Shown: piece by piece, positions 14,402 through 38,727 of the stretch
How positions within the stretch are numbered: position 1 is the stretch's first letter
Layout: each line of letters opens with the position of its first letter
Sequence record: PV593634.1
DNA: 64,000 nucleotides
Reading direction: 5' to 3' (one strand)
Notes under the pieces: model-generated
Told to the model about the DNA's origin: nothing
What the model saw: the letters and a program-made list of their open reading frames with translations, nothing else
Database searches by the model: none
Position numbers and translations under genes: made by a program

Positions 14402-15246
14402 TAGCGTTTCCTTGGAACGGTCATCTTGATAGAATCTGCTTTACCCTTAGGATCAGCATAAGCAAGATATTTCTTCATCTCGGTGTTAAACATATCTTTG
14501 AATTCACGGTGGGCATCCGCGTATCCTTGGATATCGTCTTGAACATCTTCAACCGTTACACCAAAGCGAGATACCGCTTCTTGCATACCACGTCTGCAAG
14601 TCTTATAGATATAAGCTTTAACACCTAACTCTACAAGCTCAGCAAACTTGTCATACATCTTGGGTGGGATTATGGAGAAGTGTTCGTCATAGGACAAAAC
14701 AACTTTAGCGATCATATTAAACATGGCTGAACCAGCATCACGAATAATGAAGGAGTTATTCCCCGTCATTGTGAAACTAGTAAATGAACGCTGTACCTGT
14801 CCATCATCTAAACCATTGATCAAGCGGTTCATACTACCGGTCATTGAACTACTGCCACAAGTTGCGTAGTTGTTGAAGTTGTAACCGTTGTTAATAGCCC
14901 GATTAATATTTCCAGGATAGACTTCTATTACCTGGATAATACGGCGACCGCCAGTCATAAAGTCTGGAACGTTAACTGCAATGATACCGCCTTGCAGGTT
15001 TTCAATATTGGCAGCGCTAAGATCAATAATCTCAGTTGTACCACCAGCGACGTTCAGCAAAGGCCCTACCATCTTCATGATGACCTTTTCACGAATACCT
15101 TGTTCAATTGTGAACTCATCATTCACAGGAGCCCAAATGGACCCATAGCCGTTATTTGGATTGTTAAAGGCTAACTTGAGTAAGTATTCCGAAATATCAG
15201 TAGGTCCGTTGATAACGTACTCAATTGAGAAATCAACTGGATTCAT
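14401..15246 (-). CDS. Conserved hypothetical, probably virion protein
   Basis: 281 aa, GAGG RBS, translationally coupled to the next gene. Confidence 0.6.
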   Translation of the reverse strand: MNPVDFSIEYVINGPTDISEYLLKLAFNNPNNGYGSIWAPVNDEFTIEQGIREKVIMKMVGPLLNVAGGTTEIIDLSAANIENLQGGIIAVNVPDFMTGGRRIIQVIEVYPGNINRAINNGYNFNNYATCGSSSMTGSMNRLINGLDDGQVQRSFTSFTMTGNNSFIIRDAGSAMFNMIAKVVLSYDEHFSIIPPKMYDKFAELVELGVKAYIYKTCRRGMQEAVSRFGVTVEDVQDDIQGYADAHREFKDMFNTEMKKYLAYADPKGKADSIKMTVPRKR

Positions 15247-15296
15247 AATAACCTCTTTTATAATGGAATTACAAAAGATCGAAGTACAGACATAAA

Positions 15297-15325
15297 CCCC
15301 TACCCCTCCGAAGAGAAGGTAGGGG
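15297..15325 (-). terminator. Intrinsic terminator
   Basis: CCCCTACC...GGTAGGGG; minus strand continues into TTTATG. Confidence 0.75.
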
Positions 15326-15333
15326 ATATGCTT

Positions 15334-15436
15334 GTCGGGTAAGGCAGGACGGTTTCAGGCATGAATGGCAGACACACCTGAATCCCCGTTTCGTCCATTT
15401 GTTTTAGTTCGCAGGACTCGTCAGCTGTTACGAACA
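15334..15436 (-). ncRNA. Type I hammerhead ribozyme
   Basis: Minus strand: CAG CUGACGA GUCC-17 nt loop-GGAC GAAA CGG-hairpin-CCG UC^ CUG. All core nucleotides and stems I-III are present. Confidence 0.88.
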
Positions 15437-16037
15437 CCTCTCTCTCACCAGGGTAGAGATTTGGTAGGTCCTCAGATATCGCATCGCTAATCACGTTAGC
15501 TAATAGGCATTTGGAGTATCAGGACTCCGCCTTGAGTTATGCTTTCGTTCTGAAGGACCAATGGATGTATCCTCACAACCTCAGACACTAGACTCGATTC
15601 ACGTAAGTGTTTAATTTTGGTCTCGGCCGTGTCGGTAGCAAGGATACTGAAGGGATGCAACGTTCCCAAGTAAGATAGATATTGTTTCGCTTCGGCCCAG
15701 GATGGAGTTCGGGTTCTACCATCATCGATAACCCGACGAGCGCCGTCGGAGAGTGCATTCAGCTTATGCTACTGGACATTCTATCAAACGCGTTGCTAAG
15801 CGCCAACGGATTCCGAAGGCACCATCCACCAGGGCTGTTTCGTACCTGACCCATGAGTCAGAATACCAGTCACCTGGATTTAGTTCCCTGGAAGCTGCGA
15901 TTCCTCCAGGGATTTAGCCCTCAACTTTACGCCGGTCTTCGCCAGCAGGCTGAGGGTCTTACGAACCCATTGTGTTGACTGGTGAATCCGAGTTAAGAGT
16001 CCTTAGTCGTTAAGACTTACTGCCCATTAACCCCGAC
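15334..16037 (-). ncRNA. Large structured non-coding RNA (about 700 nt), family not recognised
   Basis: No credible ORF; 5' and 3' ends complementary; many hairpins and long-range helices; G-U pairs favour the minus strand. Confidence 0.75.
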
Positions 16038-16064
16038 GCACACTTCCCAACAGTTTGGGTCTAA

Positions 16065-16460
16065 CTATGATCCGTAATCGAGTTTTACGAATCTACCTTT
16101 ATAGTAGCCAAAGTTTTCAGGCTTTGCATCGCTTCTATAAAAGTCAGGAGAGATTGTGGTTAAAGATGGTGACAACGCACAGAGTCTTTCTAGCTCAACG
16201 AAGTATAGTCCTCTGTTATTAACAGGGGCGCAACGTCTCATCACTATGAACAATCCAGTACGTGTTCCCATAACCGACGGACACAGATGTGAATCAGGTC
16301 TATCAGCTATTCCTCTCCATTTCCATTCAGTAATATTAGCTAGCAGTCCTTGTAGGAAATGTTCCCAACTGTAGAACGACGGTAGTTTAATAGCGTACCG
16401 TTTCGTCAATATCACTAACCTGGTGGCGCCTTTTCTGTTAACCTTGATATTGGGCAACAT
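16065..16460 (-). CDS. Minimal protein-kinase-like fold protein
   Basis: 131 aa; GATRLV, YAIK (VAIK-like), DAKPEN (DxKxxN), KLDYG (DFG-like). Confidence 0.65.
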   Translation of the reverse strand: MLPNIKVNRKGATRLVILTKRYAIKLPSFYSWEHFLQGLLANITEWKWRGIADRPDSHLCPSVMGTRTGLFIVMRRCAPVNNRGLYFVELERLCALSPSLTTISPDFYRSDAKPENFGYYKGRFVKLDYGS

Positions 16461-16680
16461 GAGGCATCAGTGCAGACCAACCGCCGACGTGTTTATCGTC
16501 AACAAAGATCTGTGGAACTTCGCGAACCATAGTGCCACAAATTTCACCGAGCTTAACAGCATCGATACCTTGCTCAACGATGTCGATGTATTCAACTTCG
16601 ATAGCAGGTTTTGTGGCACACAGGTTTTTAGCTTTAACACAGTTAGGGCAATTCGGTTTGCCGTAAATCGTTACTTTCAT
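16438..16680 (-). CDS. grx: Glutaredoxin
   Basis: 80 aa; CPNC, VPQIFVDDKHVGG. Confidence 0.9.
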   Translation of the reverse strand: MKVTIYGKPNCPNCVKAKNLCATKPAIEVEYIDIVEQGIDAVKLGEICGTMVREVPQIFVDDKHVGGWSALMPHVAQYQG

Positions 16681-16860
16681 TTCTTATACTCGCAGGTTTA
16701 TTAAATATGAATTCATATTACAGTGTAATCATCACTCGTCTTGGTTTCCGTTCAGAGTGTTTCATAGTTAGCCGTAACCTTATGATGAATCACTTAGGTT
16801 CTTATGGTTATGTCTTTCGACACCTTTACACTAACCAGTGATACTGGAATGAATAAAGTT

Positions 16861-16947
16861 TGGAGCCAAGTACTGGATTCGAACCAGTGATGTCCTTTCG
16901 GAAATGGATTTGCAATCCATCTGCTTCGACCGCTCACATAACTTGGC
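16861..16947 (-). tRNA. tRNA-Cys(GCA) with long variable arm
   Basis: Acceptor GCCAAGU/ACUUGGC, anticodon arm AUGGA-UUGCAAA-UCCAU, T arm ACUGG-UUCGAAU-CCAGU, U73, encoded CCA. Confidence 0.9.
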
Positions 16948-16951
16948 GTAA

Positions 16952-17057
16952 TCGTCTCGGCCTCAGGAGTTTAACCTGACTACTGTGAAATCGCCCAGTG
17001 GTAGAAACTAATCATCCACCATCACGACTTCACGACCTATCTACATAGATAACCGAA
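16952..17057 (-). ncRNA. tRNA-like element B
   Basis: UUCGGUU/GGCCGAG stem, UCAGG-UUAAACU-CCUGA T-like arm, 3' ACGA; interior is not a cloverleaf. Confidence 0.4.
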
Positions 17058-17060
17058 TTT

Positions 17061-17148
17061 GTTATCGGGAGCAAGATTCGAACCTGCATAGTCTTACGGA
17101 CGTATCCGCCGTCGAATTTCCTCACTAGGTTTAAAAGACTATCCCGAT
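17061..17148 (-). ncRNA. tRNA-like element A
   Basis: AUCGGGA/UCCCGAU stem, GCAGG-UUCGAAU-CUUGC T arm; D and anticodon arms replaced by a UAGUCUU/AAGACUA helix. Confidence 0.6.
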
Positions 17149-17154
17149 GTTTGT

Positions 17155-17544
17155 TTAATCAGACTGAACTTCTATAGGTTGAGCCTTTGTTCTAAGTCCG
17201 CTGGCTGTTGTTATCGAATCGTCTTGAACGAGACCGTTCTTAATGAACATAAGCTGTTTACCTATAGAAATTACTTCAGACCATCCAGCCACTTTAGCAA
17301 CCGATAGGATTTCATTGATGTGTTCTTTGGTGATTTGGCGCTTGGCCGAGATCTCCGATAAACCATTTCCAGCAAATGCATGGAGATTGGCTTTCTCAAT
17401 GAATTTATTAACTAGCTTTAACACATCACCGCTTGACATCAGGTAGATCGGATCGTTCTCGGTTCGATCTGCCGGATCCGGTAATAGCAGGACTTGGGCA
17501 TCTTGAATCTGAAGCGTTACATCTTTCATTTCTAACTTCCTCAT
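17155..17544 (-). CDS. Hypothetical protein
   Basis: 129 aa in the tRNA cluster. Confidence 0.6.
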   Translation of the reverse strand: MRKLEMKDVTLQIQDAQVLLLPDPADRTENDPIYLMSSGDVLKLVNKFIEKANLHAFAGNGLSEISAKRQITKEHINEILSVAKVAGWSEVISIGKQLMFIKNGLVQDDSITTASGLRTKAQPIEVQSD

Positions 17545-17604
17545 GGGTTGTTCGCTAAAAACCTTAAAATAGGTAAGCGAGGATCTTCATGACATTATGA
17601 AGTT

Positions 17605-17693
17605 TGGCAGAGAGTAAGGGATTCGAACCCTTGTGCCCCGAAGGACAACCTCCTTAGCAGGGAGGCGACTTAAACCAACTCATCCAACTCTCT
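17605..17693 (-). tRNA. tRNA-Ser(GCU)
   Basis: Anticodon arm CCUCC-CUGCUAA-GGAGG, long variable arm, G73, CCA. Confidence 0.95.
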
Positions 17694-17815
17694 AATAGGC
17701 TCTCTCTCCCTATTTAAGGGTCACCTACACCAACAGCGCCCGGTATTTAGCCGAGATGTAATTATGGGATTGGGATTTTCAAGCCCTCACCGGCGGTGAT
17801 TGTAGAGAGATAACG

Positions 17816-17891
17816 TGGCGCTTGTGACAGGACTCGAACCTGTGACATATGGATTAACAGTCCACCGTTCTACCGACTGAACTACACAAGC
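17816..17891 (-). tRNA. tRNA-Asn(GUU)
   Basis: 76-nt cloverleaf, anticodon arm GUGGA-CUGUUAA-UCCAU, CCA. Confidence 0.95.
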
Positions 17892-17898
17892 TTAATAC

Positions 17899-18402
17899 TT
17901 ACCGTAACACTGGGAATTGGTCTTTTACTTCTCTTATGAGTTTATTGACGTCAATTCCTTCGGGAGCGCTTAATACTATCCTGGTTCTCGCATGAACTAA
18001 TGTCTGACCTCTGTTTGCTTCAGTGCAGGCTGAAGTCAAAGTAAAGTCACCATTTGTATTAATGGTGAGCGAGCTACCGGACAGTGTTACATTCTTCTTA
18101 CCGTTGATTACGGTAATGGTTTCACCAGACTCATTAACGATGTAAGCTTCTTCATTACGATCGACGTATCGAGTACGTGGACCATCTTCACCGTTGGCTT
18201 TAGGGCAATCGATTAAGATCGCAGCTATTGGACCACTGTTAAGGATGTCAAGTGTATAAGCACCAGCGATTGGTTCTAAGGTCTCACGCTGTGAGATATA
18301 GACTGGCTGATGCTGTTGGAATATTTGATCTCCAATAGATGGAGTCGTTACCTGTTCCTGTAAAGGAATGTCGTACTTGGTGATCTTCTTAAGATATAAC
18401 AT
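17899..18402 (-). CDS. Hypothetical protein
   Basis: 167 aa, GAGG RBS. Confidence 0.65.
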   Translation of the reverse strand: MLYLKKITKYDIPLQEQVTTPSIGDQIFQQHQPVYISQRETLEPIAGAYTLDILNSGPIAAILIDCPKANGEDGPRTRYVDRNEEAYIVNESGETITVINGKKNVTLSGSSLTINTNGDFTLTSACTEANRGQTLVHARTRIVLSAPEGIDVNKLIREVKDQFPVLR

Positions 18403-18414
18403 TTTGTATTGCCT

Positions 18415-19080
18415 CGTAGTGATAGTGTTGGTGTGAGGTATTATAAAGTCTGCCCCTCACTAAGATTCCGCTTAGTGTTTAACCGGCTGGCCGCCGGGGT
18501 CATTTGTCTCACTAGAGTTACTTGGAAGCTATTACAACCAAGACTTATCATGGGGTCCTCGCACTCCCCACTCCCTTCTCACGTCTTGCCCTCGACCAAC
18601 GAGGTGGAATCGGTACCACCCTTCTTAAAGAACTATCTTAATAACTCTTTAAGAAAGAAGGTTTGATGCTCGTCCGATATCTAAATCAGCGCTGGTCCTT
18701 TCGGAGGGCGACGAGCTTCAAGGTTCTGCTTGCACTTCATAGTCACTTGGTGTCTACTTGTAACAATGTACTTAGATCCGCCTAACTAATGGTGCTTGAC
18801 ACTACAGCGATGTTAACGCTTTATATAAGCCGAAGTTAATCGGTGATTGTTGAGTATCGTGGAGGGACTCGGTTCCTAATTGTGGTCCTGCTTTGGATTC
18901 GCTCTTTGGGATCAGCTGGAACATGTAAATTTCCTAAGAGAGTCCGACTTCGCTGCAACGCGTCCCTCGGCGGGAGATTGTTTTCCCAACATGTCGGGGA
19001 TGGTAGTACATTGTCAATCCGCAGATTGCCAATCAGACATGTCGAGAAATTGGTGATGTTTAACAGAGTATGGAGGCTCG
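18415..19080 (-). ncRNA. Second large structured non-coding RNA (about 600-660 nt; ends approximate)
   Basis: No credible ORF; 11-bp long-range helix, GAAA tetraloop and at least eight local hairpins. Confidence 0.6.
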
Positions 19081-19084
19081 GTTA

Positions 19085-19360
19085 TTAAATTACTTCATAC
19101 CAATCTTTACCGAACAGATCGGAAATAGAAGGAACCCAGGTGTTGACACGTTCGCCATTCACGATTACCAGGAAACGTTCCAGATAAAGGCGATCAAGGC
19201 CAGAGTCTTCAGAAGGGTTAACACTCGATGCGATTACAGAACCGTGAACTTGTATATACAAGTTCTTACCGTTCCAACCAGCACGAGCATATTTCTTGCC
19301 AGCTTCCAATCCAACCAGTACGACTGAAAATGGAATCAGCTTTTGTTCTTGTTGTGACAT
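19085..19360 (-). CDS. DUF2829 / Tad2-like nucleotide-signal sponge
   Basis: 91 aa; ARAGWNGKNLYI and WVPSISDLFGKDW match the DUF2829 pattern. Confidence 0.75.
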   Translation of the reverse strand: MSQQEQKLIPFSVVLVGLEAGKKYARAGWNGKNLYIQVHGSVIASSVNPSEDSGLDRLYLERFLVIVNGERVNTWVPSISDLFGKDWYEVI

Positions 19361-19773
19361 ACTATATCCCTTTTGATATATACTTAATTAAAAATCTATA
19401 TTAAAAGAGCCAGGGACGTCATATCCCTGGTTGCTAATATAGCAGTAAGAATGCGTCATAAGTTTGTTGAGAAGATGGCTTTGCAGGAGACCACTTCCAT
19501 ATATCTATTCCGAAAAACAAACATATGGAAGTAGGGTCTAACGACCCTAGACAATCCCAAGAAGATTTCCTTACCTTCCCTATAAACACTAGACAATGCT
19601 TATAGGGAAAGCAAATGCGCACCAGGAAAAGTTGTGCGCACTCACCCAACCCACTAAGAAGATTCCAAGCCGCGGAGCACAGGACCCTTCTTTATGAACA
19701 CTCAGGAAGAACTCATAAAGAAAGGTGGGAAGTGGCAGTCTTCCCAACCTTGATACATATAAGGAGGTTTTTT

Positions 19774-19890
19774 ATGAACAATGGCAACAGTTTAAATAGC
19801 AATACCTATCAACCGATGACGAAACACGATGGCAGACGAGTTTCTGTAAATACACTCTTTGGAATGCGCTTAAAGAAACGAAGACATTAA
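19774..19890 (+). CDS. Small basic protein (38 aa)
   Basis: AAGGAGG six bases upstream of ATG; MNNGNSLNSNTYQPMTKHDGRRVSVNTLFGMRLKKRRH. Confidence 0.5.
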   Translation: MNNGNSLNSNTYQPMTKHDGRRVSVNTLFGMRLKKRRH

Positions 19891-20028
19891 TTTCACATAA
19901 TATCTTCGACCAGTGTAATTAATCACTGTAAAGGTTTGAGTATATGAGCAATGCAATTTGAACAAGATGATTTGAGCAGGTGATCATTTCGTTACATAAT
20001 ATATACCAGTTCCATTAATTAATAAACC

Positions 20029-20045
20029 GATATTATCTACGTGTA
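20029..20045 (+). promoter_or_regulatory. Phage promoter-like motif
   Basis: GATATTATCTACGTGTA, identical to 31032-31048, at the head of the accessory gene run. Confidence 0.7.
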
Positions 20046-20086
20046 AGCAATTCGACTTATTTAAATTAACTTTAGAGGTTACTAGA

Positions 20087-20701
20087 ATGCAAACCATTAA
20101 TCAGACTCAAGTAGAATCAATCCGCACAATTATCAGCGGGCAGTTGCGTGAGAAGTTCAGTCTGGACCAAATCGTCATTACCAAGGTAGATGATGATCTT
20201 CTCTATCAAGGTCATGAATTCGAATCAGATGTATACGCTCTGGAATTCATTATCAATGGCCAAAACCGCTACACAACCTTCTTCGGCTACCGGAATGGTA
20301 AGATCGGGTTCACTCGTTGTAAAGAAGGCATTCTGCGTCGTCTGGCTGGTTTGATCCGTCCGCACGATTTCGGACTGGGAGCAACTGATGACTATTATCG
20401 TCGTGATGATGTCATTGGTAAATTCCTGGAGTATGTAATAAACCAGAAAGTAGAGATGGAGATCCAAGATAAATTGGATAACCTCTACAAAGGTACGATT
20501 CGTTGTTCTGATTACACATTCGGCTACTATGTAACTCGTCGTCACAAAACAACCATGAGTTATGATGCCGATGTAGAGATCCTGGTTCGTGGTGAATCGG
20601 ATCCAACCTATCGTCGTTATGAAGCAAACGTCATTAACGGCCGTATGGTTAGTCTTCGCAATTCCGACGGAGTGGAAGTTCCACTGAAGTCATTGTTCTA
20701 A
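20087..20701 (+). CDS. Hypothetical early protein
   Basis: 204 aa, GAGG RBS. Confidence 0.75.
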   Translation: MQTINQTQVESIRTIISGQLREKFSLDQIVITKVDDDLLYQGHEFESDVYALEFIINGQNRYTTFFGYRNGKIGFTRCKEGILRRLAGLIRPHDFGLGATDDYYRRDDVIGKFLEYVINQKVEMEIQDKLDNLYKGTIRCSDYTFGYYVTRRHKTTMSYDADVEILVRGESDPTYRRYEANVINGRMVSLRNSDGVEVPLKSLF

Positions 20702-37996: not shown

Positions 37997-38345
37997 CATA
38001 CTTGAGGACGCCCTATTCCAAAGAGAAGCTAAACCGTATAAGAACGTGTACTTTATCAAACCACTTAACCCAGGGGACCGAAAACAGTTCTTCTGTAGTT
38101 TCCGTTTTAAAACCTCTAAAGGTGAAGTGTTGTTGTGCCGAGTTGAAATCAACTTGGAATACGAGAACAATACCGTATACGGTATTAGTTTGCTGAAACC
38201 GAGAGAACGTGAATCTATCACCTTCTTCCGTAAACGTCAACGTATCGTTGGCAAATCTATTCTTGAAATCATTCAGTCCGTTGTAGTCCCAGTACTCACG
38301 GATAAAATAAATAAAGTGGAGAGTATGTATGAACAAAGCATCTGA
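37971..38345 (+). CDS. Hypothetical protein
   Basis: 124 aa. Confidence 0.65.
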   Translation: MQTRKIVSSILEDALFQREAKPYKNVYFIKPLNPGDRKQFFCSFRFKTSKGEVLLCRVEINLEYENNTVYGISLLKPRERESITFFRKRQRIVGKSILEIIQSVVVPVLTDKINKVESMYEQSI

Positions 38346-38727
38346 AGCAGTAAAACAATTCGCTAAAATGAAAGTTACCCAGATCGCTACATCTCTGATC
38401 GGTAAACAGATCCCTAATCTTTACAAGATCGAAGACCAATTAGGTTTCGGCATTCGTATTAGTGAGGGTGAATTAAACTTCGGCTTGTATGTAACCGCAG
38501 CTCCCGTAGAAGAAGCAGGTCCAGGTAACTTCCTGTTCACACTGGGTGCGATGTTCTATCAGCCAGCGGTAGTTCGCCAGGGTTATCAATTTGAACCTGT
38601 TCCTCTGGGACGTATGGTTGAAATGCAATATCCGCTATATGCGGAAGACGAGCAGGAACTTACAGATGGCATCATGCAGATTCTGATTGATGAATCTGAG
38701 AATATCATTTGTCAGTTACTGGAATAA
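38329..38727 (+). CDS. Hypothetical protein
   Basis: 132 aa. Confidence 0.7.
   Translation: MNKASEAVKQFAKMKVTQIATSLIGKQIPNLYKIEDQLGFGIRISEGELNFGLYVTAAPVEEAGPGNFLFTLGAMFYQPAVVRQGYQFEPVPLGRMVEMQYPLYAEDEQELTDGIMQILIDESENIICQLLE

Follow-up and report, generated by a model that had tools for sequence, protein, structure and literature searches.

The window analysed here, a 64,000-nt stretch of sequence record PV593634.1, stems from the Shewanella jumbo phage SXP01 (269,939 bp; the coordinates of window and record are identical) and holds a 682-nt gap without open reading frames (ORFs) at 18403..19084. An original prediction, made from the letters of the window, had placed a single structured RNA of 600-660 nt on the minus strand of this gap. 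Our comparative analysis points instead to a mosaic: the minus strand carries at least two structured, non-coding RNA modules that are inherited independently of each other and whose fold is under purifying selection, a reading to which we assign a probability of roughly 0.85. One module, R1, is about 200 nt long; the other, module A, measures about 100-130 nt and comprises two stem-loops, the second with an invariant loop of 20 nt, and a probable pseudoknot. R1 and module A are two new families of small-to-medium phage RNAs outside Rfam.

The non-coding, structured character of the minus strand is borne out: no minus-strand ORF inside 18403-19084 exceeds 40 aa, homologs covary, and the models match the minus strand only. 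The single 600-660-nt RNA had to be given up, as its two conserved parts evolve and move independently. All helices named in the prediction can be read in the window, and five of them gained comparative support (GGUGG/CCACC, UGGGG/CCCCA, CUUGG/CCAAG, CACUAAG/CUUAGUG and the UUCUUAAAGA hairpin), while the rest were unsupported or contradicted.

Two modules rather than one giant RNA

The gap is an accessory slot of variable content, with a Tad2-like anti-defence gene on one side and the phage tRNA cluster on the other. Its counterparts in relatives range from ~160 to ~890 nt and differ in which of the two RNAs, and which small ORFs and HNH endonucleases, they contain. The modules are distributed over this slot as follows:

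Module A and R1: SXP01, OBP, L059/L132
Module A only: L130, L131, Yubaba, N1M2, Kc263
Neither module: pEt-SU, Survivor

Beyond these, all other carriers of R1, more than 30 phages or contigs, lack module A, and module A occurs without R1 not only in Yubaba, N1M2, Kc263, L130 and L131 but also in about 50 lambdoid prophage contigs. In OBP and in the sister phage L059/L132, a conserved 74-aa gene (PHROG 5444) separates module A from R1 (OBP, locus L002, 4290-4514, MNLYLVERTD..., unannotated in the OBP record; L132, 3276-3500, MKLYLIERTD...), and L132 has an extra 171-aa ORF between the modules and an HNH endonuclease gene after R1. A relative of the 74-aa gene lies ~1.4 kb downstream of R1 in the Salmonella jumbo phage SA002. 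Because the modules occur apart and protein genes stand between them in OBP and L059/L132, a single giant RNA is not an evolutionary unit; co-transcription of both modules in SXP01 is possible.

The stretches of the gap outside the two modules contain the following elements:

18762..19015, minus strand: long-range helix of the original prediction, GACAAUGUACU (19005-19015) with AGUACAUUGUU (18762-18772), enclosing module A; unsupported
18806..18843, minus strand: two small hairpins, CCGA-UUAAC-UUCGG and AGCG-UUAACAU-CGCU, 3' of module A (alignment and BLAST)
18668..18716, minus strand: hairpin GCUCGUC/GACGAGC with inner UCC-GAAA-GGA, then conserved GCUGAUUUAGAUAUCG; in the minimum-free-energy (MFE) fold; specific to the OBP-like clade

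The inter-module space of SXP01 (18656-18841) holds clade-specific hairpins whose counterparts in OBP, Yubaba and N1M2 are only loose. The two small hairpins are shared with Yubaba and N1M2 only. For the element at 18668-18716, OBP, Yubaba and N1M2 have hairpins that are loosely analogous and a 3' tract that is conserved, which is as far as the predicted GCUCGUC/GACGAGC helix can be followed.

These extra conserved tracts of the OBP-like clade are among the observations that would fit one giant RNA of ~600-660 nt, with all gap helices, the 11-bp one included, in a single fold like that of GOLLD or ROOL. The gap is also ORF-free and contiguous, its minus strand is devoid of terminator-like sites, and folding of the whole gap gave z = -4.2 for the minus strand (20 shuffles only) and z = -1.5 for the plus strand; GOLLD and ROOL, too, lie near phage tRNAs (PMC5737381). 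We nevertheless consider a giant RNA very improbable. Its conserved parts are apart in most carriers and interrupted by protein genes in OBP and L059/L132, R1 alone (201 nt) occupies a spacer between two tRNAs, and no GOLLD or ROOL match was found in Rfam at E<=10. The 11-bp helix really comprises 10 Watson-Crick pairs and one G-U, is unused in the MFE fold and is not rare by chance, a perfect 10-bp stem appearing in 13.6% of gap shuffles. A search of relatives with RNAduplex, in part uninformative, found no counterpart. Another predicted helix, GGACUC/GAGUCC, overlaps two covarying stems of module A, SL1 (CCGA/UCGG) and SL2.

The prediction had further placed two different giant RNAs within 3 kb. 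That the two regions are unrelated holds, as the R1 and module A models have no match in the other gap ~3 kb away; that the region analysed here is giant does not. The other large ORF-free gap (window 15247-16064, minus strand), presumably the "first large RNA" of the prediction, is conserved at 73-83% identity in Yubaba, Sureiya, pEt-SU, Kc263 and Survivor, where all matches fall in unannotated DNA, and in N1M2, whose match is covered by an annotated "hypothetical protein".

R1: fold and family

The features of R1 in SXP01, all on the minus strand, are:

18429..18639, minus strand: R1, structured RNA of ~200 nt (model match 199.6 bits)
18622..18655, minus strand: P0, 10-bp hairpin UUCUUAAAGA/UCUUUAAGAA, directly 5' of R1; a hairpin of variable sequence stands here in the R1 homologs read
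18603-18620, minus strand: Pa, covarying helix
18594-18597 with 18498-18501, minus strand: PL, long-range helix GGUC/GACC
18551-18570, minus strand: Pc, covarying helix
18521-18542, minus strand: Pd, covarying helix
18508-18517, minus strand: Pe, from the R1 alignment structure
18483-18497, minus strand: Pf, from the R1 alignment structure
18458-18477, minus strand: Pg, covarying helix
18453-18458, minus strand: conserved 3' tail GAGGGG (alignment)

In BLAST searches, the 3' third of the gap proved 71-86% identical to non-coding DNA of several phage groups, namely OBP, SA002, the 75-kb Pseudomonas phages Holyagarpour and Ebordelon, Pseudomonas phage D6 and the FBKp24-group Klebsiella jumbo phages. 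A MAFFT alignment of 11 sequences, the SXP01 window among them, served as seed for a seven-helix structure and a covariance model, which was run over loci from one pattern scan per public collection. In the seed alignment 92.3% of cells were paired, compared with 73% in shuffles and 32-46% in slid controls, and double changes affected 25 of the 38 R1 pairs; none of 500 shuffles reached the observed values. The model returned 45 matches (E 1e-34 to 1e-63, roughly calibrated), 37 of them distinct. The match in the window follows by construction, the window being part of the seed, so that the 26 distinct non-seed members are the real test. The distinct homologs span jumbo phages, 75-kb Pseudomonas phages and metagenomic viral contigs (IMG/VR and metagenome, 36-61% G+C). 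Their alignment, which is fitted to the model and hence biased towards structure, had 93.3% of cells paired and double changes in 30 of the 38 pairs (0/500 shuffles).

Four helices of the original prediction reappear in this fold and covary in the homologs: GGUGG/CCACC is Pa (18616-18620 with 18603-18607), UGGGG/CCCCA is Pc, CUUGG/CCAAG is Pd and CACUAAG/CUUAGUG is Pg. The P0 hairpin is supported by differently sequenced hairpins at the same position in the homologs that were read. The predicted CCUCG/CGAGG hairpin is replaced by PL: its loop, GGUC, covaries with the distant GACC, with double changes in all four pairs (AACC/GGUU and GACC/GGUC in other phages). The unpaired tracts of R1 are near-invariant (UCG, GAGG, GGAG, UGAU, GUC, AAUA, GUAACUCU, GAGACA, GUUAAA and a CGGAAU loop). 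In many members Pa and Pc are stems of 5-6 bp with a 7-nt UUCRAnn loop and resemble the T-arm of tRNAs; a strict UUCRAnn test was passed by 9 of 37 sequences for Pa and 17 of 37 for Pc, and, judged by eye with register shifts of one base, by the majority in both.

This conservation bears on whether R1 and module A could be decaying or selfish sequence, such as degenerate tRNA genes or the cargo or scars of homing endonucleases. Descent from tRNAs is suggested by the T-arm-like hairpins, HNH genes are found in or near the slot in L132, N1M2, D6, Holyagarpour and Centimanus, and presence is patchy among close relatives. Near-invariant unpaired tracts combined with many compensatory changes, in phages of Shewanella, Pseudomonas, Salmonella and Klebsiella and in environmental contigs of 36-61% G+C, however indicate long purifying selection, and tRNA detectors leave R1 unscored, which makes decay very unlikely in our view. 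Homing-endonuclease genes do sit in the slot beside RNAs and tRNAs (L132 4635-5108; N1M2, locus L006, 2914-3501), comparable to segB in the T4 tRNA cluster.

Unannotated small protein-coding genes are an almost negligible alternative. Short "hypothetical proteins" of 39 aa and 55 aa are annotated over R1 in SA002 and over module A in SPN3UB, and stop codons are often absent from the R1 antisense strand (median run 61 codons). Against this, the sense ORFs of the window measure at most 40 aa here, substitutions are concentrated in compensating pairs, and indels between landmarks distribute the landmark spacing over all three classes modulo 3 (18/12/7), so that neither R1 strand has a conserved reading frame and coding potential of R1 was rejected. 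The two annotated coding sequences (CDSs), ACSA002_2056 (SA002, L003 2552-2671) and SPN3UB_0065 (L188 3054-3221), are probably spurious calls.

In Yubaba, N1M2, pEt-SU, Kc263 and Survivor, the 37-sequence model with filters off found no diverged R1, and among 185,579 bacterial and archaeal species genomes the R1 pattern had 24 matches, all of which failed the model. Strong copies do occur on two very long metagenome contigs, L045 (Ga0308157_10000028, 677,834 bp; 175 bits) and L088 (Ga0247725_1000001, 1,539,155 bp; 166 bits). These could be megaphages or cellular genomes, and if they were cellular, R1 would not be confined to viruses.

Module A

The following features were located in the 5' part of the SXP01 gap:

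~18842..18970, minus strand: module A with SL1, SL2 and conserved segment GCAGGACCACAAU (match of model R2)
18944..18970, minus strand: SL1, CCGA (18967-18970) with UCGG (18944-18947), 19-nt loop GGGACGCGUUGCAGCGAAG; compensatory stems
18902..18940, minus strand: SL2, CUCUUAGG with CCCAAAGAG, near-invariant loop AAAUUUACAUGUUCCAGCUGAU; covarying stems
18883..18891, minus strand: GCAGGACCA, probable pseudoknot partner of SL2 loop bases UGUUCCAGC (18915-18923), from 19 sequences

Three near-invariant tracts, GCGUUGCAGCGA, UUACAUGUUCCAGC and GCAGGACCACAAU, are common to this part of the gap and to OBP, Yubaba and N1M2. A scan of IMG/VR for ACATGTTCCAGC followed, after a gap of 15-45 bases, by AGGACCACAAT retrieved 55 contigs with module A, mostly prophage-like and of 35-55 kb. 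The commonest type is 98-99% identical to the interval between the Q antiterminator and the holin of the Salmonella phages SEN34, SPN3UB and FSL SP-016. In these Salmonella prophages, terminator-like hairpins stand on both sides of the module, and in some contigs (L156) a tRNA follows.

Both stems change in sequence and keep their pairing. SL1 reads CCGA/UCGG, CCUG/CAGG, CCUA/UAGG, CCGG/CCGG or CUAG/CUAG in jumbo phages, and CAUGC/GCAUG, CCAGC/GCUGG and CUGGG/CCCAG are further variants; SL2 reads CACUGG/CCAGUG, CACUAG/CUAGUG, AUCUCUCCCG/CGGGAAGAGAU, GCGG/CCGC, AAGG/CCUU or AUAUACAG/CUGUAUAU. Among 12 prophage copies, covariation was found in SL1, SL2 and SL3, with double changes in 9 of 21 pairs overall and in 3 of 5 pairs of SL1. 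On four of five measures none of 500 shuffles reached the observed values, and for further pair types 2 of 500 did.

Model R2 was built solely from prophage copies, without any jumbo-phage sequence, and is an independent test for the window. It matches 18842-18967 with 27.2 bits (E=1.5e-6, rough calibration), and the window also has the other features that define the family, the SL2 closing loop UACAUGUUCCAG and the downstream AGGACCACAAU. Seven other jumbo phages were matched as well (OBP, Yubaba, N1M2, L059, L130, L131 and Kc263), while no match was obtained in the other R1-bearing loci searched or in the T4 region. A weak match at window 38290-38407 lacks the motifs and was dismissed as noise. 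Megablast found no module A in complete genomes of E. coli, and Rfam has no family over the module in the prophage loci.

The SL2 loop probably pairs with the downstream segment. All seven proposed pairs between UGUUCCAGC and GCAGGACCA are standard in 19 sequences; one pair changes from CG to UA in 3 sequences, one is G-U once and five are invariant. As a single compensatory event, this change is suggestive of a pseudoknot but lends it weak support.

Genomic context and possible action in cis

R1 is a stand-alone functional unit of ~200 nt that resides preferentially within phage tRNA arrays. This size follows from contig L016, where tRNA-Leu ends at 1196, tRNA-Ser starts at 1398 and the intervening 201 nt consist of the whole of R1 with a short P0, and from the direct adjacency of a tRNA in OBP, D6, L025, L040 and L081. 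A tRNA lies within ~600 nt of R1 in 12 of 35 loci scanned, and the distance from the R1 tail to the 5' end of the following tRNA is ~8-13 nt in OBP, L016, L025 and L040 (by reading). In the FBKp24 group, R1 comes after a long tRNA array and before an annotated terminator. An all-against-all BLAST of the ORFs flanking R1 revealed no protein family common across lineages. Straight after R1 in SA002 (L003, ~2660-2740), a tRNA-like start, GCCAUGUAGCUCAGUG..., and a T-arm-like GCAGGUUAAAAUCCUGC can be read; ARAGORN made no call, and the segment may be a degenerate tRNA.

Such positions might be expected of cis-acting leaders, i.e. processing or stability signals of a polycistronic tRNA or late transcript, or RNA antiterminators. 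The modules are indeed found upstream of highly expressed units, the tRNA clusters of jumbo phages and, between terminator-like hairpins, the lysis/late operon after Q in lambdoid prophages, and the genes downstream are diverse, as one would expect of a general device at the transcript level. On the other hand, the placement of R1 downstream of the tRNA array and before the terminator in the FBKp24 group is not that of a leader, and in L016 it has the look of a separate gene, with a tRNA on either side. OBP-like jumbo phages rely on RNA polymerases of their own, and lambdoid late genes are transcribed by the host enzyme. Given this polymerase difference, an element that binds polymerase and is conserved in sequence across both groups seems unlikely. 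We therefore regard cis-acting leaders as rather unlikely. As R1 is placed both before and after tRNA arrays, it is better seen as a gene than as a leader.

A proposed action in trans

The best overall explanation, which we hold at slightly better than even odds, is that both modules are stable RNAs made together with tRNAs and acting in trans on a host component. They would share a minus-strand transcription unit with the tRNAs, as is proposed because the gap has no minus-strand terminator-like site, and would be excised by the nucleases of tRNA maturation; where R1 abuts a following tRNA, the RNase P cut at the tRNA 5' end would set the 3' end of R1. The modules would then accumulate as stable RNAs of ~130-200 nt and act on a host component conserved across gamma-proteobacteria. 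Action in trans is favoured because module A is common to phages with different RNA polymerases and because R1 stands on either side of tRNA arrays.

That this mechanism is also tRNA-related is a tentative proposal, possible at best. The target of R1 might be tRNA-related, with R1 as a mimic, a decoy or a binder of tRNA, as its T-arm-like hairpins and its tRNA neighbourhood, and only these, suggest. More speculative, and decidedly unlikely as it stands, is a larger scenario in which R1 would represent an unrecognised, tRNA-centred class of phage RNAs whose T-loop hairpins mimic tRNA or clamp the tRNA elbow, deployed with tRNA arrays and anti-defence genes, in SXP01 the Tad2-like one, to blunt tRNA-targeting host defence or stress responses, and in which module A, likewise new and pseudoknotted, would have passed horizontally between temperate lambdoid and lytic jumbo phages.

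Several observations weigh against a pair of stable, tRNA-associated RNAs as set out above. In SXP01, the T-arm-like loops of Pa and Pc are both degenerate (UACCGAUU and AGUGCGAGGA), a 167-aa ORF intervenes between R1 and the first tRNA, and the Rfam tRNA model leaves R1 unscored, ARAGORN and the Rfam tRNA and tmRNA models making no call in 18403-19084. Two thirds of the scanned R1 loci have no tRNA in the fetched sequence, many contigs being short. The GAGGGG tail has no consistent partner by eye, and the partner proposed by RNAalifold conflicts with the covarying Pa. Folding of single modules gave unremarkable z values of -0.9 to -1.8; since the thermodynamic signal is weak, support beyond chance is comparative, not energetic. 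On the side of method, homologs were gathered via exact sequence patterns, which may bias the true range and context of the family, and the calibration behind the E-values of our purpose-built models was shortened, leaving them rough. Transcript ends, processing and stability of the modules are all things that we infer.

Comparison with known RNAs

The check by cmscan that the original prediction had called for returned no Rfam 15 match in the gap, and neither GOLLD nor ROOL, in 14500-20500 at E<=10. Models of ribozymes, riboswitches, group I/II introns and RNase P RNA likewise had no match in the gap (Hammerhead_1, E=6.3, falls at 15372-15430, outside it), and a scan of the whole window at gathering thresholds listed only tRNAs. 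A literature search by topic and sequence words found neither RNA described, although catalogues of unnamed candidate phage RNAs may contain them.

GOLLD and ROOL are orphan, highly structured non-coding RNAs that occur in phages and prophages; tRNA genes are frequent neighbours and may be transcribed along with them (PMC5737381). The phage or prophage context near tRNAs is shared with the modules described here (PMC5737381), without being diagnostic; unlike the single units of 580-800 nt in those families, the SXP01 gap has separable units of ~100-130 nt and ~200 nt.

The closest analogy, in genomic logic and not in homology, is rnaC/rnaD of phage T4 (species 1 and 2), each annotated as "small, stable RNA" at the end of a tRNA cluster that holds a homing endonuclease gene. 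They measure 119 and 139 nt as against ~200 nt for R1. As homologs they were rejected, as R1 (filters off) and R2 gave only noise on T4 69000-74000.

With tRNA-like RNAs (the tRNA-like domain of tmRNA, Y RNA/YrlA, skipping-rope), R1 shares T-arm-like hairpins and a tRNA neighbourhood. It differs in having no ARAGORN or Rfam match to the tRNA clan, tmRNA, Y RNA or skipping-rope, and neither an acceptor-like stem nor a 3' CCA was seen. A preprint on tRNA mimics covers families other than R1 and module A. Prophage module A, in turn, recalls the lambdoid late-leader RNAs (lambda 6S/pR' transcript) and HK022 put in its position between Q and lysis genes and its two stem-loops, a likeness that we take to be positional only; unlike these leaders, module A is also found in jumbo phages, far from any Q gene.

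Neighbourhood of the slot

The gap and the genes around it are arranged as follows:

19085..19360, minus strand: 91-aa CDS, Tad2-like (Thoeris anti-defence 2, DUF2829; Pfam PF11195), upstream of the gap
18403..19084, minus strand: 682-nt gap free of ORFs, flanked by the Tad2-like CDS and the 167-aa ORF; mosaic of elements
17899..18402, minus strand: 167-aa ORF between R1 and tRNA-Asn, unannotated in the GenBank record (ORF list)
17816-17891, minus strand: tRNA-Asn (ARAGORN)
17605-17693, minus strand: tRNA-Ser (ARAGORN)
16861-16947, minus strand: tRNA-Cys, further downstream (ARAGORN)

The Tad2-like CDS, labelled hypothetical in the GenBank record, matches Pfam PF11195 with E=7e-15 (55.7 bits, cut-off 25). 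It opens a gene order (small DUF2829 gene, non-coding gap, tRNA-Asn/Ser, glutaredoxin, second non-coding gap, virion protein) that is shared by OBP, Yubaba, N1M2, pEt-SU, Kc263, Survivor and three IMG/VR contigs. The syntenic gene of pEt-SU is annotated as DUF2829; that of N1M2, N1M2_258, is annotated as "methionine--tRNA ligase", which looks wrong for a protein of 80 aa. The 167-aa ORF has no Pfam or PHROG match, and its sole relative is a weak one (40% identity across 60 aa), encoded at the corresponding position of the gene order in pEt-SU.

Further along the minus strand, window 17063-17148 might be a fourth tRNA or tRNA-like gene, scoring 28.3 bits with the Rfam tRNA model (gathering score 29) and receiving no ARAGORN call. 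A protein family of 95-129 aa recurs within the tRNA clusters of R1-bearing jumbo phages from three lineages that are otherwise distant (window 17155-17544, minus strand; L011 1073-1432; L012 686-1027; L013 1263-1622; L025 6008-6295); the window copy has no Pfam match.

Implications

Annotation can be corrected in both directions: in SA002 and SPN3UB, short CDSs that are probably false lie over the RNAs, whereas the OBP and SXP01 records omit real small genes of the slot. There is a growing view of phage tRNA clusters as cassettes for counter-defence and for the tuning of translation. The non-tRNA RNAs within them have been known since T4 rnaC/rnaD and are, to our knowledge, still unexplained. 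Here, two RNA families supported by covariation are found in isolated phages amenable to laboratory culture (OBP, SXP01, SA002, D6, FBKp24, Holyagarpour, SEN34 and SPN3UB), which makes genetic tests possible. That module A is present both in lambdoid prophages of Salmonella and in jumbo phages of Pseudomonas, Shewanella, Serratia and Klebsiella is an uncommon distribution among RNA genes and speaks for a host target that is conserved; if module A has indeed been exchanged between these groups, this target would be common to temperate and lytic lifestyles.

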